The notes under the pieces are model-generated. The model saw nothing but the letters and a program-made list of their open reading frames with translations, was not told the DNA's origin and did no database searches. Position numbers and translations under genes: made by a program. From Klebsormidium nitens (lineage: Eukaryota > Plantae > Klebsormidiophyceae), in NCBI GenBank assembly GCA_000708835.1, contig DF236987.1, positions 1 through 64,000 on the forward strand: 64,000 nucleotides of DNA. Direction: 5' to 3'. This document shows, piece by piece, positions 5,518 through 23,900 of this stretch. How positions within the stretch are numbered: position 1 is the stretch's first letter; the number at the start of each line of letters is the position of its first letter.

Positions 5518-8500
5518 CTACTCGTCTTCCTCCTCTTCCTCTTCCTCTCCCTCGTCGTCCTCGTCCCCTTCCTCGCCGTCGTCCTCGCCTTCCTCGCCCT
5601 CCTCCCCGGTCGGGCTCTCGGGCACCTCGGGCTCCGGCTTGGGCGGCAGCTCGTTGGACTCAGCCAGGGCGGGCTCACCCTCGGCGGGCTCGTATTCTGT
5701 TTGCACGACGGGGGGCGAGGCCGGGCTGTAGGGTGCGTTCTTCACGCCCCAGCCGATGTAGATGTTGGAGAAGCCGGAAGGGGTGGCGATGGCATAAGCG
5801 CCGGGCCACAGGAGGGACCGGATACACGCCACCTGAAGGACGTAAGGAAAATCAACAAATGAATGCCATCGACTTCGCATCAAGCTTCGAGTGAGCAGCC
5901 CTGCAAAGGGAATTCCATTAGTCCTTCGAAATCGCTCTCGACAGTTTCCTTGAGAAGCATCGTCGATCTTCACGGTTCCCACGCATCACGTCCCTAGTCG
6001 AGACGCTGCGGCTGACCTTGTGCTTGAGCCCGGGTATGTCCGAGCTGAGCGCGGCCGCCCAGGGCTTCCCCCCGGCCGGCAGCTCCGCGTCGTTGTCCAG
6101 CGTGGTGAGCGGCGCGGGCCCCTCCTCCGCCTCCTCCTCGCTCGGCTGCCGCTCCTCCTCCTCGCCCTCCTCCGCGTCCTCCGCCGGCGGGGCCACCCAC
6201 ACCGCGCACCGCCCCTGCCAACACACACAGCACCGTCAGACTCGTCAGAGTTCAGCCGTGATGGTCGGCCTGTAAATGTCCGATTGAGGCATTCTGAACT
6301 GATCGCCAATGGCCGGTGTGAACAAGTGGCACCACATTTTGGTGGTTCTCTCTCGTCTTGGACGCCTTTGTTTCATACTTGCCATTCTGAAAGCGCAAGC
6401 GCTTCCGTTGCTGCAGAGTAACCTGACAAGGCGGCCTCTCTTAATCGTGGAAACCGTTGCATTAGATTCGCTTGTAATGCCGTTTTGCTGCATGTATTGT
6501 GAGGCTGGAGACGGTGTGAGGCTGGAGACGGCAGTCCAATGAAACGGTCTTAAGGCGTTATACCTGCCTTGAGTTTTTGCGTTCGGGTTTCCCATGTCTT
6601 GGCGACGTTTTCTGCTGCATGGCCGTCACGTCTGCACGGGTTGTTTTGAGCCCGCTGCCAGGCGGCTGCCCTGCCGGCCAGCGGTGTTGCGGGTGCGCAC
6701 CTGTTTCTTGATGTGTGGCGTCCTGTGCGCCCAGGCCTCGAGCGCTGCCGCGTCGGCCGCGGCGGGCGCCACGAACTCGTCGTTCTTCTCGAGGCCGGCG
6801 TCCTCCTCGCCGACCGTGAAGTAGCCCGCGGGGCACACCACCGTGCTGCCCGCAATGCGCGCCAGCTGCGCGCGCAAAAAGTGGGCCTCCACGCCGGGGA
6901 AAGGCGGGTACGCGGACACCTCCGCCTAGGGAGACACGAGCAGGAGGAACGGGTGAGATAGAGAATGGAGGACGGACTCTAGTAGGCAGAGCTGATGGTC
7001 AGCGAAGGATTCCTTCCTATGGCAGCTTTCAAACGGTCTTCTGGTAGAGGAAAGCCTTCCGCAGGATATCGGCAATTGATACCACTACAAACGACAGCCG
7101 CTTAGCCACTTCGCTTCACTTCACTGCCAGTGCAGCCAGTGCTTCTGGCACGGTACGAAAGAACCGTGCGTCGTACTATCGAAGTGACACTCCAAGCATG
7201 CACTCAAGCGCCGCTCCAGCGTAGACAGCGTAGAGCGGCCCTGACCTGAAGGTTGCCCGTGAGGAACTTTTTAATGCTGCGGGCCGTCTTGACCTGCAGC
7301 GGCGTCACGTCCGGCAACCGCGTCAGCGGGCCCCCCAGCCGCGTGGTGACCCAGTAGACGCACGCGTTGGCCCCGCTGCGCTCCTCCGGCGGCACGCCGT
7401 CCTGGGGGCGGCCCCACATTACAGCAGCCTCCGCGGCCACAGCCTCCTCCGATTTCTGCACGGGCAGAGACCGGGGGGTGAGAGAGGTGAGAGGGCAGCC
7501 GTCAGGGGTTGCGCAGGATGCCAAAGTGCCTAAAATCGTTCGTAAGTCGATTCAAAATGCTGTTGGAATTGACGTTGGTACATCCGAGGCCTCCACACTC
7601 TGACTGCGCTGTCCTGTGCTGTTCTCACTGTTACAACAGGCTCATCTCAGCATACTGGCCGGACCTTTTCTTCATCAGCACTTCTTCCAATCAAAACATA
7701 AGATCGGCCTAGTGAGGAGACTTCGAAGTCTCGTGCTCATCCTCACTGTACTTCGAAGCAGCACTACGAGACCCCGAACAATCTATTTCGGGAAATGGGG
7801 TTATATTTCTGGTACTGTTGTGCTAGTGTACCAATGCAGTTTTGCAGACTCGTGCCTCAACAAGCTCGCCATTGAAACACAGAGTAGTTCTGCTGCTACT
7901 CTCCATCAAGCAGTGCCTTCTGAGAAGGAAGGAGTCCCCGGCCGTGTGCGCACCTCTTCCTCCTCGCCCTTGGGCGTGCTCTCAAAGACGTAGTAGTTGG
8001 CGGTGGTCCCGAAAAGCTTGCCAAAGAAGCGCACGCTGGCGCAGTTCTTGGCCGGGTCCTGCCCCAGCTTGTGCAGTGCCAGCGCCACGCGGTGCATCTC
8101 GCCTGCGCCCAGCCCCACCCCGCATGCTGCGTACAGGCTGGCGTCCAGCAGCACGTCCTCCGCGTCATACTCGTTCAGCGGCTCAGCCTCCTCCGCCTCG
8201 CCCGTCTCAGCGTTAATGGCCGGCTCGGGAGTGCTGCAACCAGGACAGATTTGTAGCTGCTCAGTGCCGGTCTCATACCCAACTTGCCGCACCACAAGGG
8301 TCCAGTCCCTAGCTCAGAGATCGTGTGCCCCAGTCGTAGGTGGTATACTGCAGTCTGGCAAGACATGACTCAGAGGAGAGGAGATGGGACTTGCAGAGCT
8401 GGCGAAAACTTGACATGACAGTTCGAGTTCTAAATCCGTGGGCTGGAGAGCCAAGCTGGTCAATTTGGCGGCCCCAGTGGCTTGCGCTCGTTTGTATACG

Positions 8501-14789: not shown

Positions 14790-15790
14790 ATTTCCGATCA
14801 ACTGCCTCAATACTTACATAATAACATGGACGGTTGCGCTAGCCCCGCCTGGCCCTGTGGGCGTGCTTGTATAGAGAGTCCGATCTCAATGCGACCGACG
14901 GTTAGTGAGTCACTCCGGATGAATCCGATGCACTTGATGATGCAGGCGCCCAGCTCAGCTAGGGGCGATCCATATGCCGTCATGCATTGTATATCCTATC
15001 AACCGTGGGATTACCGTCGGCCGGCGGGCCGCGGGCCCCGGGCCGACCACCTTATAGTCACGATCACTAGGATATGCTTAAACGCGTATATACGGCGTAT
15101 CCTCTTGATTCTTTCAAACGACTAAGCTATCGCATCATGCATGCATTGCACCTCCCGCGGTCCATAATCAGGCCCGCGGCCGGGCAAACCCTGTCCTTTT
15201 TTACCACTTCTAGCTTATAAGGTCCGGAATTGGTGTACGTACATATAGATACAATCAAAACCTTGGCGATGGGCTTGAAAAACGGGCGCGGCCGCCCGAG
15301 TTACCGCTCGAAGTGAGCCCTTATGCATACGCATATATGGTTGGATTACTTCAGGCTCGCGAACTAGCAAGCGCTGTGTTGCTCATGATCGCAGTTGATT
15401 TGTACGGTAATCAAGCACCTTATAAACTCACTTTTTGGTGCGACCCAGTACCGCGGCCCAGTATGGTACCAGTATGTGACAGTTGTTCGAGTCGGAGTGG
15501 CGGGGAATGGGATATGCATGCTTGTGGATCCACACTTGGATTTTACAATTCCGACCAGTCCAGCCTCGCATGGATCGGATCACAACAAGCAGGTTGCCGC
15601 AGAAGTGCCGTCTGAGATTGCAAGACACAATTTGTCGCCAAATTGCCAGTGCATCGGGTTGGTTACCACAAGCGTCCATTGTCAATGGGACGCTTAACAC
15701 GGTTGAATTCAACCAGGTGTGACGCAATGGTTGGGGAGATCAAGGAGTCTGGTCAATCTGCATGCGCGTGCTTTGATCATGGCCACAGCT
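14790..15790. other. Convergent-junction spacer block 2; boundaries approximate
   Basis: RY tracts at 15233-15247 (15 nt) and 15322-15339 (18 nt). GC islands at 15018-15048, 15170-15185 and 15284-15299. Confidence 0.7.
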
Positions 15791-15877
15791 CAGCTCGCTA
15801 ACTACACCTCTTTTGACAATGTTCCGCATTGCGAAAAGAAGACCTGCCCAAGCCCCGTGGCACGTCGAGGTGCTGCG

Positions 15878-18800
15878 TCAGCCGCCCGGGCCGACGCACT
15901 GGGTGACTCCCTTGGGCGTGAGGACGCAGTCTTGGCCGGGGTCCACGCGCTGCAGCACCAGGGCGTAGTCGAGAAGGGCGACCGCGCAGTTGCCAGCCTC
16001 GAAGTAGAGCTCGTCCTGGCAACAAAAGGACGGATTGGCGGTGGGAAGGGACCCCAAACACCAGCAGAAAATTGCCCCCGCCTGATACTGTATTGCTATT
16101 AGTGAGCGACAAGAGGGCACTCTTTCGAAATGCTGAGGATTTTCAAAAAGAGTTGCAAACGGCTTAGCTGATAGCGACCATCTCGGGGCCCTGAACCTCG
16201 TACCGGAGCCGTTGCACGACCGTTCTCCAATGTGTCGGGTGTGATCTTCAGGACTCCGACGATTAAAAGTATCCCCGCCTCCCTTGAAGATGTCGAACAC
16301 TCCGTCGAAAACACAACATCTTGGGTGCGAGTTTGAGGGCCCCACCATCTTAACTGCTTCACAGTCCGCAAAGACAGAACCGGACTACAAGCACAAGGCC
16401 ATCTGCGCACACGACTTATTGGCTCTCTTGTTTATGCACCGGCTCCGACGGCCGCTCATCTCTCGCAAGATGTTAAGCTTGAGAACAATCTTCCAGTTCT
16501 GCACGGCGAGGCACGCCCTGAGGCACGAGGTGAGAACATAATCGCCGCAGAGCTCGCTGTTCCTCACCTGCGGTTGCAGGTAGATGGCTCGCCGCTTGCT
16601 CCCCGTGATGCGGTCGTCGGACTCGCGGTGGAAGCGGTAAATGGCCTCGGAGTCCGCCACGTCGACCTGGCGCACGCCCAGCTTGACCCGCCGGAACAAC
16701 TCGGCGCACACGAAGTCGCCAGCGGCGTCGCTCTCGCTGAACCTGGACACACGAGGGCCAGTGCGCCAGGGTCAGAAAAAGGGGTTAATGCAAATCCTGG
16801 GTGGCATGCGATTCTAGCCGACATGCCCACTGTTCTGGAGCAGGTTCTGGACGATAGCGGCTCGAGCACCTGCAATCGGTCCAGACTCAAGTTACGGTGC
16901 TACTGACTGGAGTTAGCAATTATGTTCCGGCGGCTACGCAGTTGCGCGCTCGGCTATTGACGAAGGAAAGAAAAGAAAGCATACCTTGAAGGTGCGTCTC
17001 ATCCTTCGGATGTGTGGTTAGTGGGGGGAATTGATAGTACAGTTACAAAGTCGAAGTATCGAAGACCCTAAAAGCCACCAGAGCTTACTTTCTATCCCAG
17101 ATAGAATTTGCTCAGAATCGCCCCCACAAAAGAAAATGTGTGCTGCTAGCAGCTGCAGATGAAACTGGAAACGACAGTCCTCGAGAATTTAAGAGAAAAG
17201 CATCATTTCCAGTTAGAAGCAAGCACACCCGTAAGTAAAGGGTTGGCTTCTTTGAAACAATTTGCCGCCACCGCTCGCGCTTTCCTCCTGCTTCGTGCTC
17301 TCACCTGTTGTTGATGTACAGCTCCAGCCTGCGCGGCCCGAGCGGCTGCCCCTGCGGCCCGCTGGGGCTCAGCACGATGGTCTGCCGCGTGGGGCTGCCA
17401 CGTGGATCGTACACCGACTCCTGCACGCCGCCGTAGCCCAGGCTGGCCTCCATAAGCGACCTGGCACGCAGAAAACGTACTGGTGAGCCTCATTGGCGAG
17501 CCTTGTTCTCAACGACCCTGGAACAAGTTAAGCATCTGGGTATAGCCATTGTTCCTTAAGGTTCAAACCAATGGACAGAACGGTTGTGCTATTTCTTTGA
17601 AAGGCCTCACAATTGCACCATCGTTTAGCAGACGGATAGCACAGGAAACGCAGGAAAGCACGACAACCCTAAGCGGCCCTGCTGATTGCACGGTAGATCC
17701 CCTGCACGAAGCATGTGGCTATCGTTGACAGGTTTGTTGGGCCGCAGGACAGCTGTCTCGTAGTCTTTGGTTTCACGAGGCTTCAGGCTGTCACATCTCA
17801 GACAAAAGTTGCGATGCACCAGACTGGCCAGCAACAGCACTTTTGTAAGAAGCAAGCGGCTCACTTTGCATTGAATGCCCTGTCTGCAATGATGGCACTC
17901 TCCGGCAGCTGCCCCGCCGTGACGCGCAGCTTGTTGGCCCATGTGTCGGGCAGCGTGCTGTAGAAGCGCGCCTCGTATTGCACCGCCGAGCCCACGCCGT
18001 AGCGGGGATCTGCCACCTCTCGCGCCAGCCTGCACCAGCTACTCGCAGGTCAGGTGCGGAGCTTCAGGGAAAAATTGGTGTTGATCCATGTGATCGCAGG
18101 GGCTTTATAAACAAAGCGCCTTCCAAGAATGCGGGACAGAAACGCTCAACCACGGAAGAAAAGCGATGCCACGTCAGCCAGCCAGTGGCACTGAACAGAC
18201 TCTGTGTAGGAGCCTCCAAAGAGAGCAGTACCACGCAATCCAGGCCCAATGGATAGGTTCGCACCGTCAAGATTCTGCATATCAGAATTGTGACAGAGCT
18301 GGGGACATGGCGGATGATCCAAAAGTAGGGATTCAAGCAAGAGACGCCCCACCCGGTGGAGATGAATCGCTCCCCCAGCGGCGCCTTGAAGCCCGTCAGT
18401 TTCGCTGTGACGGTCCAGGTGCCAAAGAGCCACTGCGGGTAGTACAGCTGGAAGGGCCCCAGCAGGGCCGACCCCGGGTTGTACACGCGGTCCGCACTCA
18501 GCCGCTGCGAAAGAGGGGGGTCCAGCCCAAACGGCAGCCCTGCGCTTGTTGCGGTGGGGGGCATGGAAAGAGCTGCGCCGCACACTGTGATAGCAACCGA
18601 GTGTCGCAGCAAAGCACTGCGGGTGTGGACCTCATAGACGGAGCCCGGCTCGGTTGTGGTCTTACCACCCTGATCATCACCTTTACAACTATGATCGCTG
18701 CACAATGTGTGCTTAAGCTGCTGGTGGGCTGATCGGTGATTGCAGACAACGGTGTCGCCAGCTGGCGTCCATTCACAAGTACGGCGTGCTACAGAGGGGG

Positions 18801-19029
18801 GGCTGCTGAAAGATTCCTGAAATGCGTATACTGGGGTCTGCCACCTCGCTCGAAAAACAAAGGTGGGCGGATTATTACACAGTCTACTTTGCGAGGACTC
18901 TAGTGGCCTGCCGACCGAATAAGCGACGCTGCGGCCGCATTGTACTTCTGCTAGACGAACTCTTTGGCTGTGCCAGATTGACGATGGCTGGGCCGGGCAC
19001 TGGCAGCAGGCTGGTGCAGCACCACCCAT
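15878..19029 (-). CDS. DUF6816-like protein (cyanobacterial/plastid-type conserved unknown) with a long N-terminal targeting-like extension, 5 exons
   Basis: Exons 19029-18353, 18029-17865, 17460-17305, 16742-16568, 16015-15878. Motifs YYPQWLFGTWTVTA, IIADRAFNA, AIYLQPQDELYFEAGNCAVALLDY. The start is inferred from an uninterrupted frame back to ATG 19029. The family name is recalled, not searched. Confidence 0.72.
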
Positions 19030-19114
19030 GCTGCCACGGCGGTCTTCCGAGGCGCAGGGTCGGAGAGTGTCTTCTAGCTAGCTTACTACCTGTTGTATCG
19101 ATATGATGCCCTGA

Positions 19115-19738
19115 CTACTTCTTGTCACCCACTCCCTCCATTGAGAAGCCCCCTGCTCCAACTGACGCAGCCATTATGGCAATGGTGACCCCCTGAGCGA
19201 CGACTCGTGCGCGCATGAGCTGTTGACTTCTCTGCGTGTTGCCCTTCTTGAAAGCATACAGTCCCGCAGCTAGCACGCCAGCCGTCAAGAAGGCACCTGC
19301 AGGGTTGGTGCAGCTTGTCTATTTATCAGTCTTGATCAGACAGCCAAGCACATGACAGTATCCCTGAGAGTAATGCCTGCGGTCATCAGCTAATGGGAGT
19401 GCATGGGTGGCGCTAGGAAGTCATCTTTGATTGACAGGTCAAGCACCAATCAGCGGTGGTGCTTCTCATGAACACCTCCACTCACAAGTTGCACTTCTGA
19501 TATCAGTAGCAGTTCAAAATAACACGGATCTCTGAAAGATCCTGAAAGATCCTGCATCTGAATGGGCTGTCCCTCCAAGAATCGTCGCAATGCTGACACA
19601 CTTTGCACTGTAGTGTCAGATCTTTGAGCCTCACAGCTTCACAGACCAAGCCTTACCTGCTGGCACCCACGGGTTCCGCTTATTGCCAGAGGCAAACATG
19701 TCTTCCTCCTCCTCAAAGGGAACACCGCGGGACGTCAT
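19115..19738 (-). CDS. HIG1 domain protein (hypoxia-induced, Rcf1/HIGD2A type), 87 aa, 2 exons; not in the supplied ORF track
   Basis: Exons 19738-19657 and 19296-19115, with GTAAGG donor and CTGCAG acceptor. Protein MTSRGVPFEEEEDMFASGNKRNPWVPAGAFLTAGVLAAGLYAFKKGNTQRSQQLMRARVVAQGVTIAIMAASVGAGGFSMEGVGDKK has two hydrophobic helices and the Q-x3-R-x-R-x3-Q motif. Confidence 0.9.
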
Positions 19739-20952
19739 GCTAGTACACTTTGATTGCTCGCACGTGTGGACCCCCAGATACCCGACTTATGGCTTGTGCA
19801 AACCTGATCAAGTGCCTCCTTGAAAGAGAGCATGCGCCGGACCATGCGCACACCTTATCGCTGCGGCTCTTGACGACTGTTGGAGGAGTCGTCCTTTTCC
19901 TGCGCCAGCTTGATGAGCCTCCTGAGCAAGTAGCTAGCTGGGCCGCTGCGGCGCTGGCAGTGGCATGCACCACTTCGCAAGGAACAGGCTCGCGTGTAGC
20001 CTTAGCCTTAGGCCAAAGCACCACCCATGCCAATGCCAATGCCAATGGATGCCCCGGCCGGGCCCTAGCTTGCATGCAACTGTTCCAAGAAAAGTTTCCT
20101 TCGGGCAGAATCTTGGACTGGGGCAAGTTACAACCGGCAGCGTTTCCAGCAACGGCAAAATCGTCGTGACTATCCTCTAGACTGAAATAGCCGGCAAGAA
20201 GTGCCGCCGAATTTGCCGTTAAAAGACGCCAGCTTGAACATTCTGGAGGTTCATTTTGGGAGATAAAATTTGCAGGAGGCAACTTCTCAGAACGAAAGCT
20301 GAGGCTCATTTTCCAGCTGCTGGCACCAGCTGAGCGGCTAGCTGCGAGCTGGCGAAAAGGCCCTTCCGCATTTCGGGGCCAAACAAGACCTGATAACAGC
20401 TACATGTCTGCCTTGCTCTGCCTTAGACCCTTCTCTATGACGCATTTTCTGCTTCAAGGTTTGCGCAGGCCTGGACTTGGAGCAGAATTGAATGCTTGAT
20501 CAGTGGACTCAACATTGGAAGTTGCAAGCAGGAACATGAGCAATTTTTGATCGCATTGGCTGCAGAAATCAGATGGACTGAAGCAGACAAGCTTTACGGC
20601 AGCGACTTGGTAGCCAAGTGCAGCCAAGAGTTTGCACAAGGATAAAGAGCGGCTGCAAATGCCGCACAGCATTCATTGTATTGCAGGCCCTCAAGTTGAG
20701 AGCATCACAATTGATTGAACATTGAAGCACCGCCCACTCAACACGTTTGCTGCTGGACATTCGCTGGTCATTCCAAGCCTCATGAGCACCAGAACATTGG
20801 GGAGCTGTGGTTCAAAGGTTGCATCCCTCCCATTGCTATCAGCACCACTTACAGAGCAGGGTCGCAGTTTCGTTTCCGTTTGGAGGCCCTCTTTGAGCAA
20901 GCCCAGCCCAGGAGGTCCAACCAAGTCAACGCGGAGAGCTACTCAAACAGTA

Positions 20953-23900
20953 ATGGTTTACCATGATGGTGAGCTGGCGGTGCAGCGCAGAGTGGGCACA
21001 GCGGAGCAGGCAGCCCAGTATGCGGTGAGTGGGCGGCATTGCAGGTTGGAAACCTTCTTGAAGCTTGTGCAATCGTGTGTGCCTGCACGAGTCTCGAAAC
21101 TGCTTTCAGGCTGTACCTTCTGTCACAATTCAACAATGTAGGTGCACGTGAGCTTCTTGTGAGGTGGATGTACCTTCCTTTGTTCTAGATCTTGGAACCT
21201 GGCCCTTTGCTATTCACAAGTAAACAAGCCCAAAGCTCAAAAGGGCCCAACTCTCAACGTGAAGGTCCTTGAAGAGTAAACGTATTTCATAAGGGTCCCA
21301 TTGTGGTCTCTGGCAGCACCCCTTCTGCCTTTGACTCTTCCCCTGCGCTGTGCAGGGGTTCGTGCGGCCCCTAGTGAACCAGCAGCTCTCCCTCTTTGCG
21401 GAGCAGCGCAGTGATGTCATCGCTGCGTCAGCGGACTCTGAGGGCCGGCTGTGGGCCAGCATGCTGTTTGGCGCCCCCGGCTTCATGCGCGTCACTCCAG
21501 ATGCTTCAGCTCTTCTGGTGGGCGCCGACAACATGCCAACTGTCAGCCCAGGGGATCCCCTGCACGACAATGCACTGGCCGATGGAGCCGCCCTGGGCTT
21601 CCTCTGGTGAGTTTTAGCACCACGACCCGTTCAAAACAAGAATCATTTGAAGACAATGCTGATAAAGAGGACTCAGGAGGAGGCGCCTGCTGGGGAGGAT
21701 TTTGCCCACAGAAAATGCGTTGGAGGTGAGGGGATGCAGTAGGGGATAAAGGGATCAACCGGGCAAGTGAAAACTCATGTTGGCATTGTAGGGTCAACTC
21801 CAGGCTTGATGTGTGCATGTTTGGAACAGCGTTACGATGCATTTTCAAAGGGCGACTTAGCAGTGACTTGTAGCAATTGAGTGTGCTGATTGGCAAGTGA
21901 AAGTGCCCCTTTTTTTGTTGTTTAGTGTCACATGGTTGCGGCAGTCCTTCCTCCTATGGCCTGTCTTGGTCCGTGATTTTTTGGTCCTCCTGTAATCGCT
22001 CTCCTATAATCGCCCTCCTGTAATGGTCTGGCATTGCCATATGGCGTCTGGCTACTTCATGGCAACCCGCATTGTTCTGACCCCTCTCGACCTTCTGTGC
22101 AGTATTGAGATGCAAACACGCCGGCGCAACCGCATCAATGGCGTGAGCCGCCCTGCGCGCGCTCCCCCTGGTGGGCTGTTCGTGCAGGTACAAGAGGCCT
22201 TTGGCAACTGCCCCAAGTACATCACACGGCGCACCATCTCCTCCCCTTCACAGGGGGCTGGTTTGCTCCAGGGAGAAGCCCCCCCTGTCAAAACTCAGAG
22301 CCTAACTCCTGACCAGCAGCGGCTGATTGCAGAGGCGGATATGATGTTTGTGGCCACAGCCAACCCAGGGGGAGGAGCAGATGCGTCGCACCGCGGGGGA
22401 TCCCCCGGGTTTGTGCGATTCTTGGACGAGAGGACGTTGATGTGGCCCGACTACACTGGGAATGGCATGTTCATGGTGAGCCGCTTATTTGAACATGTAG
22501 TGTCTTGATTGGCTAACTCTTGACTGGACCACATGGCAGCCAGCTAAGCCCTTGAACATTGAAAGAGCACCTCAAAACACAGGGGTGGTATTTGGCGCAA
22601 GATGCACGTATTGCATTTCAAAAAGTTTTGTTCCATCGTATTTTCTGGTTCGAAGCACGCCCTCTCCACTTGGTCGCCAAAGCGGAGGTCTGGGGCTATG
22701 CTCACGGCCTGGGTCCGCTTCCTGAAACAATTGCTCGCTTACTGCTTGTTGCCAGAACTGGAGCGCTGTTCAATGGCCTTTTGATCGGTGTTCCGTCTTG
22801 CAAAGATCTCACCCCCTCTCCGCCCCTCGCGCAGACTCTGGGCAACATCCAGCTGAACCCCGCTGCGGGCCTGCTCTTCATCGACTGGGCCGGCCACTCG
22901 CTGCTGCAGCTGACCGGCCACGCGCAGGTCCTGTTCGAGGAGGACATCGCACGCCGCCAGCTGGCGCCCCTGCTGGGCGGGGCGGAGCGCGCCGTTATCT
23001 TCACAGTCGACGAAGAGTTGCACCGCAAGAACAGCGTCCCCTTTGACTACCAGCTGATTGACTACTCCCCCTACAATTACCCCGTGCCAGCCAGCCTTGC
23101 CAAGAACAGCACGGTAGCCCCGGGGAAGGACGAGCAGACCGTGACAGTGGTAAACATCCAGCAGATTACACCCCTCGTAAAGGAGTTCACGTTTGAGACG
23201 GAAAACGTGTTGCAATACTTGCCGGGGCAGTACGCCATGTTCAATCTGGAGGTGCCGCGGGCAGGGGGTGCGGGCGCGCAGCACTTGATGCGCAGCTGGA
23301 CCGTCACCAGCACTGCAGCGCCGAACAAGCGCACCTTCTCCATCGCCGTGAAGCGCCTGCCGGGGGGGCGCGCATCCACCTGGTGAGTAGGCCCCTTGTA
23401 CAAACAAAGGGGTTCCAAGATACTGGAAATGGTCGTGCGGGGCGGCTGCCCCACTCGAGCTGGTTCTGAATGATTGGGACCACTGCGTGACGGAATGGAC
23501 TAGAGTTGAGGTCTTCTTTCAGCCCTTGAGGAGCAGAGCACGTCTGTCGGAGAACGCTGGGATGAATCCACTTAAGCCAACACCTGCACGTCCATCCAAC
23601 CCTTTTCTACGGTATGCAATTCTCGATCCATCACCGACTGTACACACACTGGGCACCTACAGTAGGCCCCCTCCCTAGTCCCCTCCTAATCTGGCTCCGT
23701 GCTTGTTCTTTCTCGCAGGCTGCACGACACCGTCCGGCCCGGCACCCTGGTGCACCTGGTGGGCACGGCGGGCGACTTCACGCCCTTCTCTGCTGCCGGG
23801 GTGGTCGCCGCTCCCCGGCTGCTGCTGCTGTCGGCGGGCATCGGCGTGACCCCCATGCTGGCCATCCTGCGCGGGCTGAGGGCAGGCCAGGGGGATCCCC

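Follow-up and report, generated by a model that had tools for sequence, protein, structure and literature searches.

We report a locus in the streptophyte alga Klebsormidium nitens in which two conserved protein-coding open reading frames (ORFs), of 87 and 436 amino acids (aa), lie 85 nucleotides (nt) apart on one strand, and in which spliced RNA assemblies from four studies cover the second exon of the upstream gene, the spacer and the whole of the downstream gene. The stretch in question, positions 15878-19738 of a 64,000-nt window (the whole stretch of DNA analysed), is identical in sequence comparison to contig DF236987.1 of K. nitens NIES-2285, and all features of both genes are on the minus strand. 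ORF1 encodes an 87-aa protein of the HIG1 family, and ORF2, which starts at 19029, encodes a protein with a DUF6816 domain. We consider it moderately likely that the two ORFs share one bicistronic mRNA, peculiar to this lineage, and that ORF2 is translated by reinitiation or from a less abundant, shorter transcript. A preliminary description of the sequence had placed the HIG1 stop at 19115, the next ORF at 19029 and a gap of 85 nt between them; reading and translation of the sequence confirm these values, and both ORFs are real, conserved genes.

The stretch occurs in 20 public runs from 7 studies, 19 of which contain at least 0.58 of its words, a fraction consistent with spliced RNA that lacks introns. 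The runs X1, X5, X6 and X14, which come from four studies, were aligned to positions 15400-20400 as assembled contigs, with depth taken as the contig mean. All five introns of the two genes are spliced out in the contigs. X5, X6 and X14 each have one contig, 1.47-1.85 kb long, that links the DUF6816 exons to HIG1 exon 1: from about 15640 in X5 and X6, and from 16567 (exon 4) in X14, it takes in the ORF2 start, the spacer and HIG1 exon 2 and crosses the HIG1 splice; no joint or loose end was found between 19294 and 18352 in these three runs. The preliminary description had also raised a 59-nt GT-AG intron at 19089-19031, which is not borne out, as the contigs of all four runs cross this region without a joint. 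Mean depth in X1 was 139.7 for the contig over HIG1 exon 2 and 147.1 for that over the DUF6816 body, and equal depth is what one transcript predicts. HIG1 exon 1 and the leader, up to 20019-20031, lie on a separate contig, which in the four studies has 0.52-1.06 times the depth of the main one (0.52 in X1 and 0.70 in X14).

For comparison we used a genomic contig of a closer relative (L011, Logan SRR23617307), two more distant relatives with exon identities of around 78-82% (L003 and L004/L005), and contigs of four still more distant DUF6816 homologues (L006-L009). Protein and domain searches were made with single exons or annotated proteins, and exons were joined solely for the ATG and substitution counts. 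Synonymous divergence (dS) between L011 and K. nitens is 0.24 for DUF6816 exon 1 and 0.53 for HIG1 exon 2.

With the Pfam family HIG_1_N (PF04588), HIG1 exon 2 alone scores 59.1 bits (cut-off 22.4; E 4.8e-16). The gene is annotated at 87 aa in the NCBI assembly, where the sole 87-aa K. nitens HIG1 on DF236987.1 is GAQ79772.1, and a second K. nitens copy lies on DF237415 in an unrelated neighbourhood. Between this copy and the DF237415 paralogue dS is 0.36 and the ratio of nonsynonymous to synonymous substitution (omega) is 0.11, the low omega implying that both copies have been kept as working genes; omega against L011 is 0.06. The product contains QQLMRARVVAQ, which fits what we take to be the type 2 HIG1 motif (Q-x3-R-x-R-x3-Q), and is probably a mitochondrial inner-membrane protein of the Rcf1/HIGD type. 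The domain match is shared with the HIG1/Rcf1/HIGD family at large; what sets this copy apart is that it is one of two paralogues, has a C-terminal extension of 5 codons and apparently lacks a 3' end of its own. In alignments the extension (..MEGVGDKK) runs past the ancestral ..KG stop. HIG1 of L011 ends in ..SWKG, like the K. nitens paralogue, and has the N-terminus MTSRGV in common with the present copy. Hence the K. nitens copy gained its 5 codons since the L011 split. When positions 19115-19132 are compared with L011:745-760 and L001:6570-6588, stop loss and small deletions are seen to shorten the spacer from 106 to 85 nt.

The NCBI model for the DUF6816 gene, KFL_000380040, has 281 aa and starts at M156 (18564). 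The preliminary description had begun ORF2 at 19029 and had allowed that the true start might lie far downstream; the start stays at 19029, which is better than the public annotation. The comparative sequence evidence thus favours a model of 436 aa that includes a targeting sequence. Full-length DUF6816 homologues have 300-470 aa and carry a twin-arginine signal (e.g. TRRAALGFLSAAVAAG) directly before the conserved domain. Its K. nitens counterpart, HTRSALLRHSVAITVCGAALSMPPTATSA, lies upstream of and across M156, and the only in-frame ATG upstream of this conserved signal, of the twin-arginine translocation (Tat) type, is that at 19029. The context of this ATG, CAGCATGGGTGGTGCTGC, is identical in L011 and sits at a local identity peak of 0.90-0.93; a conserved block extends from about -60 to +55 around the ATG and covers the 3' half of the spacer. 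In the distant relatives the ORF starts with MG around 165 codons before the domain. The frame of the extension is open in four taxa (K. nitens, L011, L003 and L004); on shuffling, the first 155 codons stayed open in 79 of 20,000 trials for K. nitens, and the corresponding stretch of the relatives in 27 and 23 of 20,000. The extension shows no indel against L011 in 465 nt at 30% divergence and in-frame indels only between L003 and L004. The wider 2,098-nt alignment with L011, which includes two introns, has 122 gap positions, and the spacer differs in length by 21 nt.

If the NCBI models were right, the upstream open frame would be leader and the two coding regions, 550 nt apart, would form an ordinary tight tandem pair. 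The annotated 281-aa protein itself speaks for this start, and its one real argument is the weak constraint on the extension: omega is 0.55-0.74 (0.74 against L011), GC content at third codon positions (GC3) is 0.535, a non-coding level (0.80-0.93 for the mature exons), control frames behave similarly, and the differences from L011 fall about equally on the three codon positions. Weak constraint is also what a long targeting sequence might show. The annotated start would lie inside the c-region of the family signal, at a position where the alignment has no Met in more distant relatives, and would leave the frame kept open in four taxa, the lack of indels beside a spacer of shifting length, the conserved ATG with its context and the length of the homologues to be explained otherwise; we regard it as very improbable. 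A putative presequence of plastid or thylakoid type, as supposed in the preliminary description, is present in the predicted protein. Its hydrophobic stretch and ATSA site align with the twin-arginine (RR) signals of the homologues, the K. nitens motif reading RS and not RR, and the stretch before the signal is unusually long (around 135 aa).

Judged from the genomic contigs, the pairing appears to be young and specific to the K. nitens lineage, that is, to K. nitens and one close relative. L011 keeps the order of HIG1, a 106-nt spacer (81% identity over 80 aligned positions) and the same ORF2 start. No HIG1 was found within 6 kb upstream of DUF6816 in L004/L005, whose sequence is collinear with both flanks of the locus in the window, or in the 324 nt upstream in L003. 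Conservation of the pairing in relatives, which the preliminary description had put forward as a check, is therefore seen in L011 but not in L003 or L004/L005. Conservation across green algae was rejected, with no HIG1 at the L003 and L004/L005 loci or on the L006-L009 contigs.

The upstream neighbour of the pair is a divergent gene for a 568-aa PNPOx/FAD/NAD protein, with its ATG at 20953. RNA depth is zero at 20076-20242, and an RNA-free gap of around 270 nt (20032-20302) separates the HIG1 leader from the plus-strand transcripts of that gene, found from 20303 onward; in this gap there is probably a bidirectional promoter that also serves the divergent gene. The two divergent start codons are 1924 nt apart in K. 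nitens and 1264 nt apart in L004, an excess of 660 nt that is close to the 624 nt of the HIG1 gene body. Our inference is that the DUF6816 leader received a HIG1 duplicate together with its intron, after the L003/L004 split and before or around the L011 split. Loss of HIG1 in the other clade together with gene conversion would be another history compatible with these data. The metagenome of L005 also contains a HIG1 gene on a separate contig, L002, with a dS of 1.4-2.0 to both K. nitens copies; no synteny of the L002 locus with either K. nitens HIG1 locus was found, which gives no pointer to the parental copy. Comparison of the HIG1 leader and spacer with the DUF6816 leader of the relatives gave no significant homology, a collinear 14-nt match having an E of 0.84. 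The preliminary description had suggested that one mRNA may couple a mitochondrial with a plastid protein. Such functional coupling finds no support here; the pairing is lineage-specific and looks like the chance insertion of a HIG1 duplicate.

Two small features of these upstream regions may be added. If the RNA-free gap is indeed a bidirectional promoter, the leader of the PNPOx/FAD/NAD gene would be around 650 nt long. L003 (positions 295-306) and L004 (around 5971-5982) share a mini-ORF of 3 codons (ATG TCA GAT TGA) that ends 6 nt before the DUF6816 start; K. nitens and L011 instead carry HIG1 upstream of that start.

In the model that we propose, transcription from around 20031 would give one spliced RNA of about 2.2 kb that ends near 15640 and carries, in order, the 87-aa HIG1 ORF, 85 nt, and a 436-aa ORF made up of a long presequence, a Tat-like signal and the DUF6816 beta-barrel. 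The HIG1 duplicate would have landed between the shared divergent promoter and the DUF6816 start codon, within the Klebsormidium lineage, and the insertion would have been kept since, with both ORFs under purifying selection. ORF2 would most likely be reached by ribosomes that reinitiate after HIG1 or after one of the shorter upstream ORFs, perhaps with a contribution from a minor shorter transcript.

Translation of ORF2 was considered from the AUGs that precede it. The start contexts are actagcATGa for ORF1 (A at -3 and at +4) and ggcagcATGg for ORF2 (A at -3). The preliminary description gave both sequences correctly and judged that of ORF2 the better; ORF1 is not clearly weak, as both ORFs have A at -3, and by the general rule it is not weak, although the K. 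nitens consensus may differ. Ten AUGs precede ORF2, namely four in the leader, the HIG1 start and five inside HIG1 (at least five further ATGs in ORF1 had been claimed), and one of the ten has a strong context (gccataATGg). With so many upstream AUGs, one of them strong, leaky scanning is unlikely, and the doubt about it already voiced in the preliminary description is upheld by the AUG count, the one strong context and the long leader. None of the upstream ORFs reaches 19029 and no AUG lies in the spacer, hence reinitiation is topologically possible. One of the upstream ORFs, of 36 codons (19735-19845, minus strand, ATG at 19845), has a TGA that overlaps the HIG1 ATG (ATGA), a layout typical of stop-start coupling that may be due to chance.

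Nuclear mRNAs that encode two proteins are established in chlorophyte algae, and the ORF1 length (264 nt) and spacer (85 nt) found here lie inside the ranges reported for them (PMC11892635). In Chlamydomonas reinhardtii and Auxenochlorella protothecoides (Duenas et al. 2025, PMC11892635), ORF1 medians are 291-357 nt and inter-ORF medians 40-183 nt, the AUG ratio before ORF2 is around 0.48, ORF1 contexts are weak, leaders are short (medians 54-83 nt), and leaky scanning has been shown. The K. nitens locus resembles these bicistrons in its short ORF1, short gap and longer same-strand ORF2, in a small organelle-related ORF1, in the unrelated predicted locations of the two products and in spliced RNA over both. 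It differs in belonging to a streptophyte alga, in an observed/expected AUG ratio of 1.0 compared with around 0.48, in the A at -3 of ORF1, in a leader of around 293 nt with four upstream AUGs, in the youth of the pairing, and in being known from contigs and not from long reads. The lack of AUG depletion, the A at -3 and the long leader make leaky scanning, the mechanism shown in chlorophytes, unlikely here. Tentatively, then, the locus may be a young two-protein mRNA in which a HIG1 body without a 3' end of its own sits in the leader of a plastid-protein gene, and in which ORF2 is reached by termination and reinitiation after 87 codons, not by leaky scanning.

Several observations weigh against a single bicistronic mRNA. 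Assembled contigs merge overlapping transcripts, so a contig that extends over two genes does not show a single molecule, and the X1 contig is interrupted at 18951-18980 by a foreign branch. Excluding the ORF1 start, 9 AUGs are observed before ORF2 and 8.9 expected, hence there is no depletion; the further marks of chlorophyte leaky scanning (a clearly weak ORF1 context and a short leader) are likewise missing. Such missing adaptation fits a young locus but equally fits a separate DUF6816 mRNA. Reinitiation after a long ORF is expected to be inefficient (PMC11892635), and HIG1 has 87 codons. An equally good reading of the conserved block around the ORF2 ATG is that it forms the core promoter and a short leader for DUF6816 transcripts of their own.

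These points lead to the main rival, namely two overlapping monocistronic mRNAs merged by the assemblers, with the HIG1 poly(A) site inside the ORF2 presequence and a DUF6816 promoter in HIG1 exon 2, the HIG1 intron or the spacer. We regard it as possible but doubtful. Contigs cannot tell such a pair from one transcript; translation of DUF6816 would be normal, which fits the lack of AUG depletion; the conserved block lies at the ORF2 ATG and in the 3' half of the spacer; a TGTAATAAT motif is found 235 nt past the HIG1 stop; and the HIG1 5' contig is shallower than the main contig in X1 and X14. However, an overlap should add depth, whereas the two X1 depths are nearly equal, and X5, X6 and X14 show no contig end or branch at such sites. 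The promoter would also need to be housed in a constrained coding exon or an 85-nt spacer. The preliminary description had named TGTAA at 18879-18875 as a possible HIG1 poly(A) signal; the motif is present but is not conserved in L011 and is uninformative, and TGTAA, AATAAA, ATTAAA, AATAAT and TATAAA are all absent from that stretch of L011. Poly(A) motifs are in any case a weak guide, because the DUF6816 3' untranslated region (UTR) itself lacks TGTAA, AATAAA, ATTAAA and AATAAT. It is also conceivable, though improbable, that the spanning RNA, although abundant in assemblies, is unproductive read-through from HIG1, with DUF6816 protein made from a separate, rare RNA. The large number of AUGs before ORF2 would suit this, and the contigs are silent on translation; against it, the X1 depths leave little room for extra DUF6816-only RNA, and DUF6816, being single-copy among the hits and under purifying selection (omega 0.18 for the mature part of exon 1), must be translated from whatever RNA exists.

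A bicistronic mRNA at this locus would add to the chlorophyte examples a case with a traceable and datable origin. Because the locus lacks the marks of leaky scanning, it lends itself to testing whether bicistrons acquire such marks after their formation and whether a long ORF1 is compatible with reinitiation. Were a young bicistron read by reinitiation to be the correct account, it would show the birth of bicistronic genes in the plant lineage together with a second translation mechanism. The corrected KFL_000380040 model (436 instead of 281 aa) matters for localisation and proteome work on K. nitens as a model alga. Our literature search found no paper on nuclear polycistrons or long-read transcripts in Klebsormidium, although it was in part too broad to count as evidence of absence.

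Table 1. Features of the HIG1 and DUF6816 genes in the order of the minus strand, with positions in the window.
Feature	Position	Strand	Description
HIG1 leader (5' UTR)	19739..20031	-	around 293 nt; 4 ATGs before ORF1; covered by RNA contigs at 19688-20019/20031 (4/4 runs)
HIG1 exon 1, coding	19657..19738	-	ATG 19738-19736; MTSRGVPFEEEEDMFASGNKRNPWVPA and the first base of the next codon; splice joint in RNA
HIG1 intron	19297..19656	-	360 nt, GT..AG; joint 19294/19655 (cut +2) in 4/4 runs
HIG1 exon 2	19115..19296	-	HIG_1_N domain; stop TAG 19117-19115
Inter-ORF spacer	19030..19114	-	85 nt, no ATG
ORF2 N-terminal extension, codons 1-155	18565..19029	-	absent from NCBI model; presumed transit peptide, then start of Tat-like signal
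Tat-like lumen signal (putative)	18538..18624	-	TRSALLRHSVAITVCGAALSMPPTATSA; RS replaces family RR; annotated start M156 (18564) in c-region
DUF6816 exon 1 remainder, start of mature domain	18353..18564	-	PF20670 E 8.2e-06; 100% match to annotated protein
DUF6816 exon 2	17865..18029	-	RNA joints, frame check
DUF6816 exon 3	17305..17460	-	RNA joints, frame check
DUF6816 exon 4	16568..16742	-	RNA joints, frame check
DUF6816 exon 5, coding part	15878..16015	-	stop TGA 15880-15878; RNA and frame check
DUF6816 3' UTR	15634..15877	-	RNA contigs end at 15634-15668

The family assignment of ORF2 rests on the whole annotated protein, which carries PF20670 and finds 23 family members with E down to 3.7e-63; exon 1 alone scores 26.0 bits, just below the cut-off of 26.8. 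Scans of metagenome contigs for more DUF6816 loci gave no match. The homologues come from plastid-bearing eukaryotes (volvocine algae and a diatom are named) and share the layout of signal and barrel, whereas in the Klebsormidium clade the twin arginine is RS and around 135 aa precede the signal. A location in the thylakoid lumen is suggested by the family's signal peptides and by its occurrence in eukaryotes with plastids. The AlphaFold model of the annotated part has a predicted local distance difference test score (pLDDT) of 90.1 and forms a closed beta-barrel. Structure matches to this model are all at background level, namely KdgM porin (Z 8.2), CpeS bilin lyase (Z 8.1), BFA1 (Z 7.2) and nitrobindin (Z 6.7), and a Foldseek search with it returned nothing at E <= 0.001. 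The CpeS-type bilin lyase, BFA1 and nitrobindin are the nearest soluble look-alikes, at these background Z values. The predicted fold makes DUF6816 a possible ligand-binding barrel in the lumen of the thylakoid. No paper on DUF6816 was found in the literature, and no function is known for the family.

Two minor features of the RNA assemblies remain. The branch in X1 is a contig with a depth of around 65 that shares the 30-mer at 18951-18980 and continues upstream, in the sense of the gene, for at least 255 nt that are not in the 64-kb window; the first 30 letters of the loose end at 18980 are absent from the window. The junction is not a canonical splice site; a chimera, a repeat or a further copy in that strain could account for it. 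Over DUF6816 intron 4, X1 and X14 contain unspliced contigs of 608 nt (15989-16596) with depths of 18-23, compared with 147-163 for the spliced form, which suggests partial retention of this intron.

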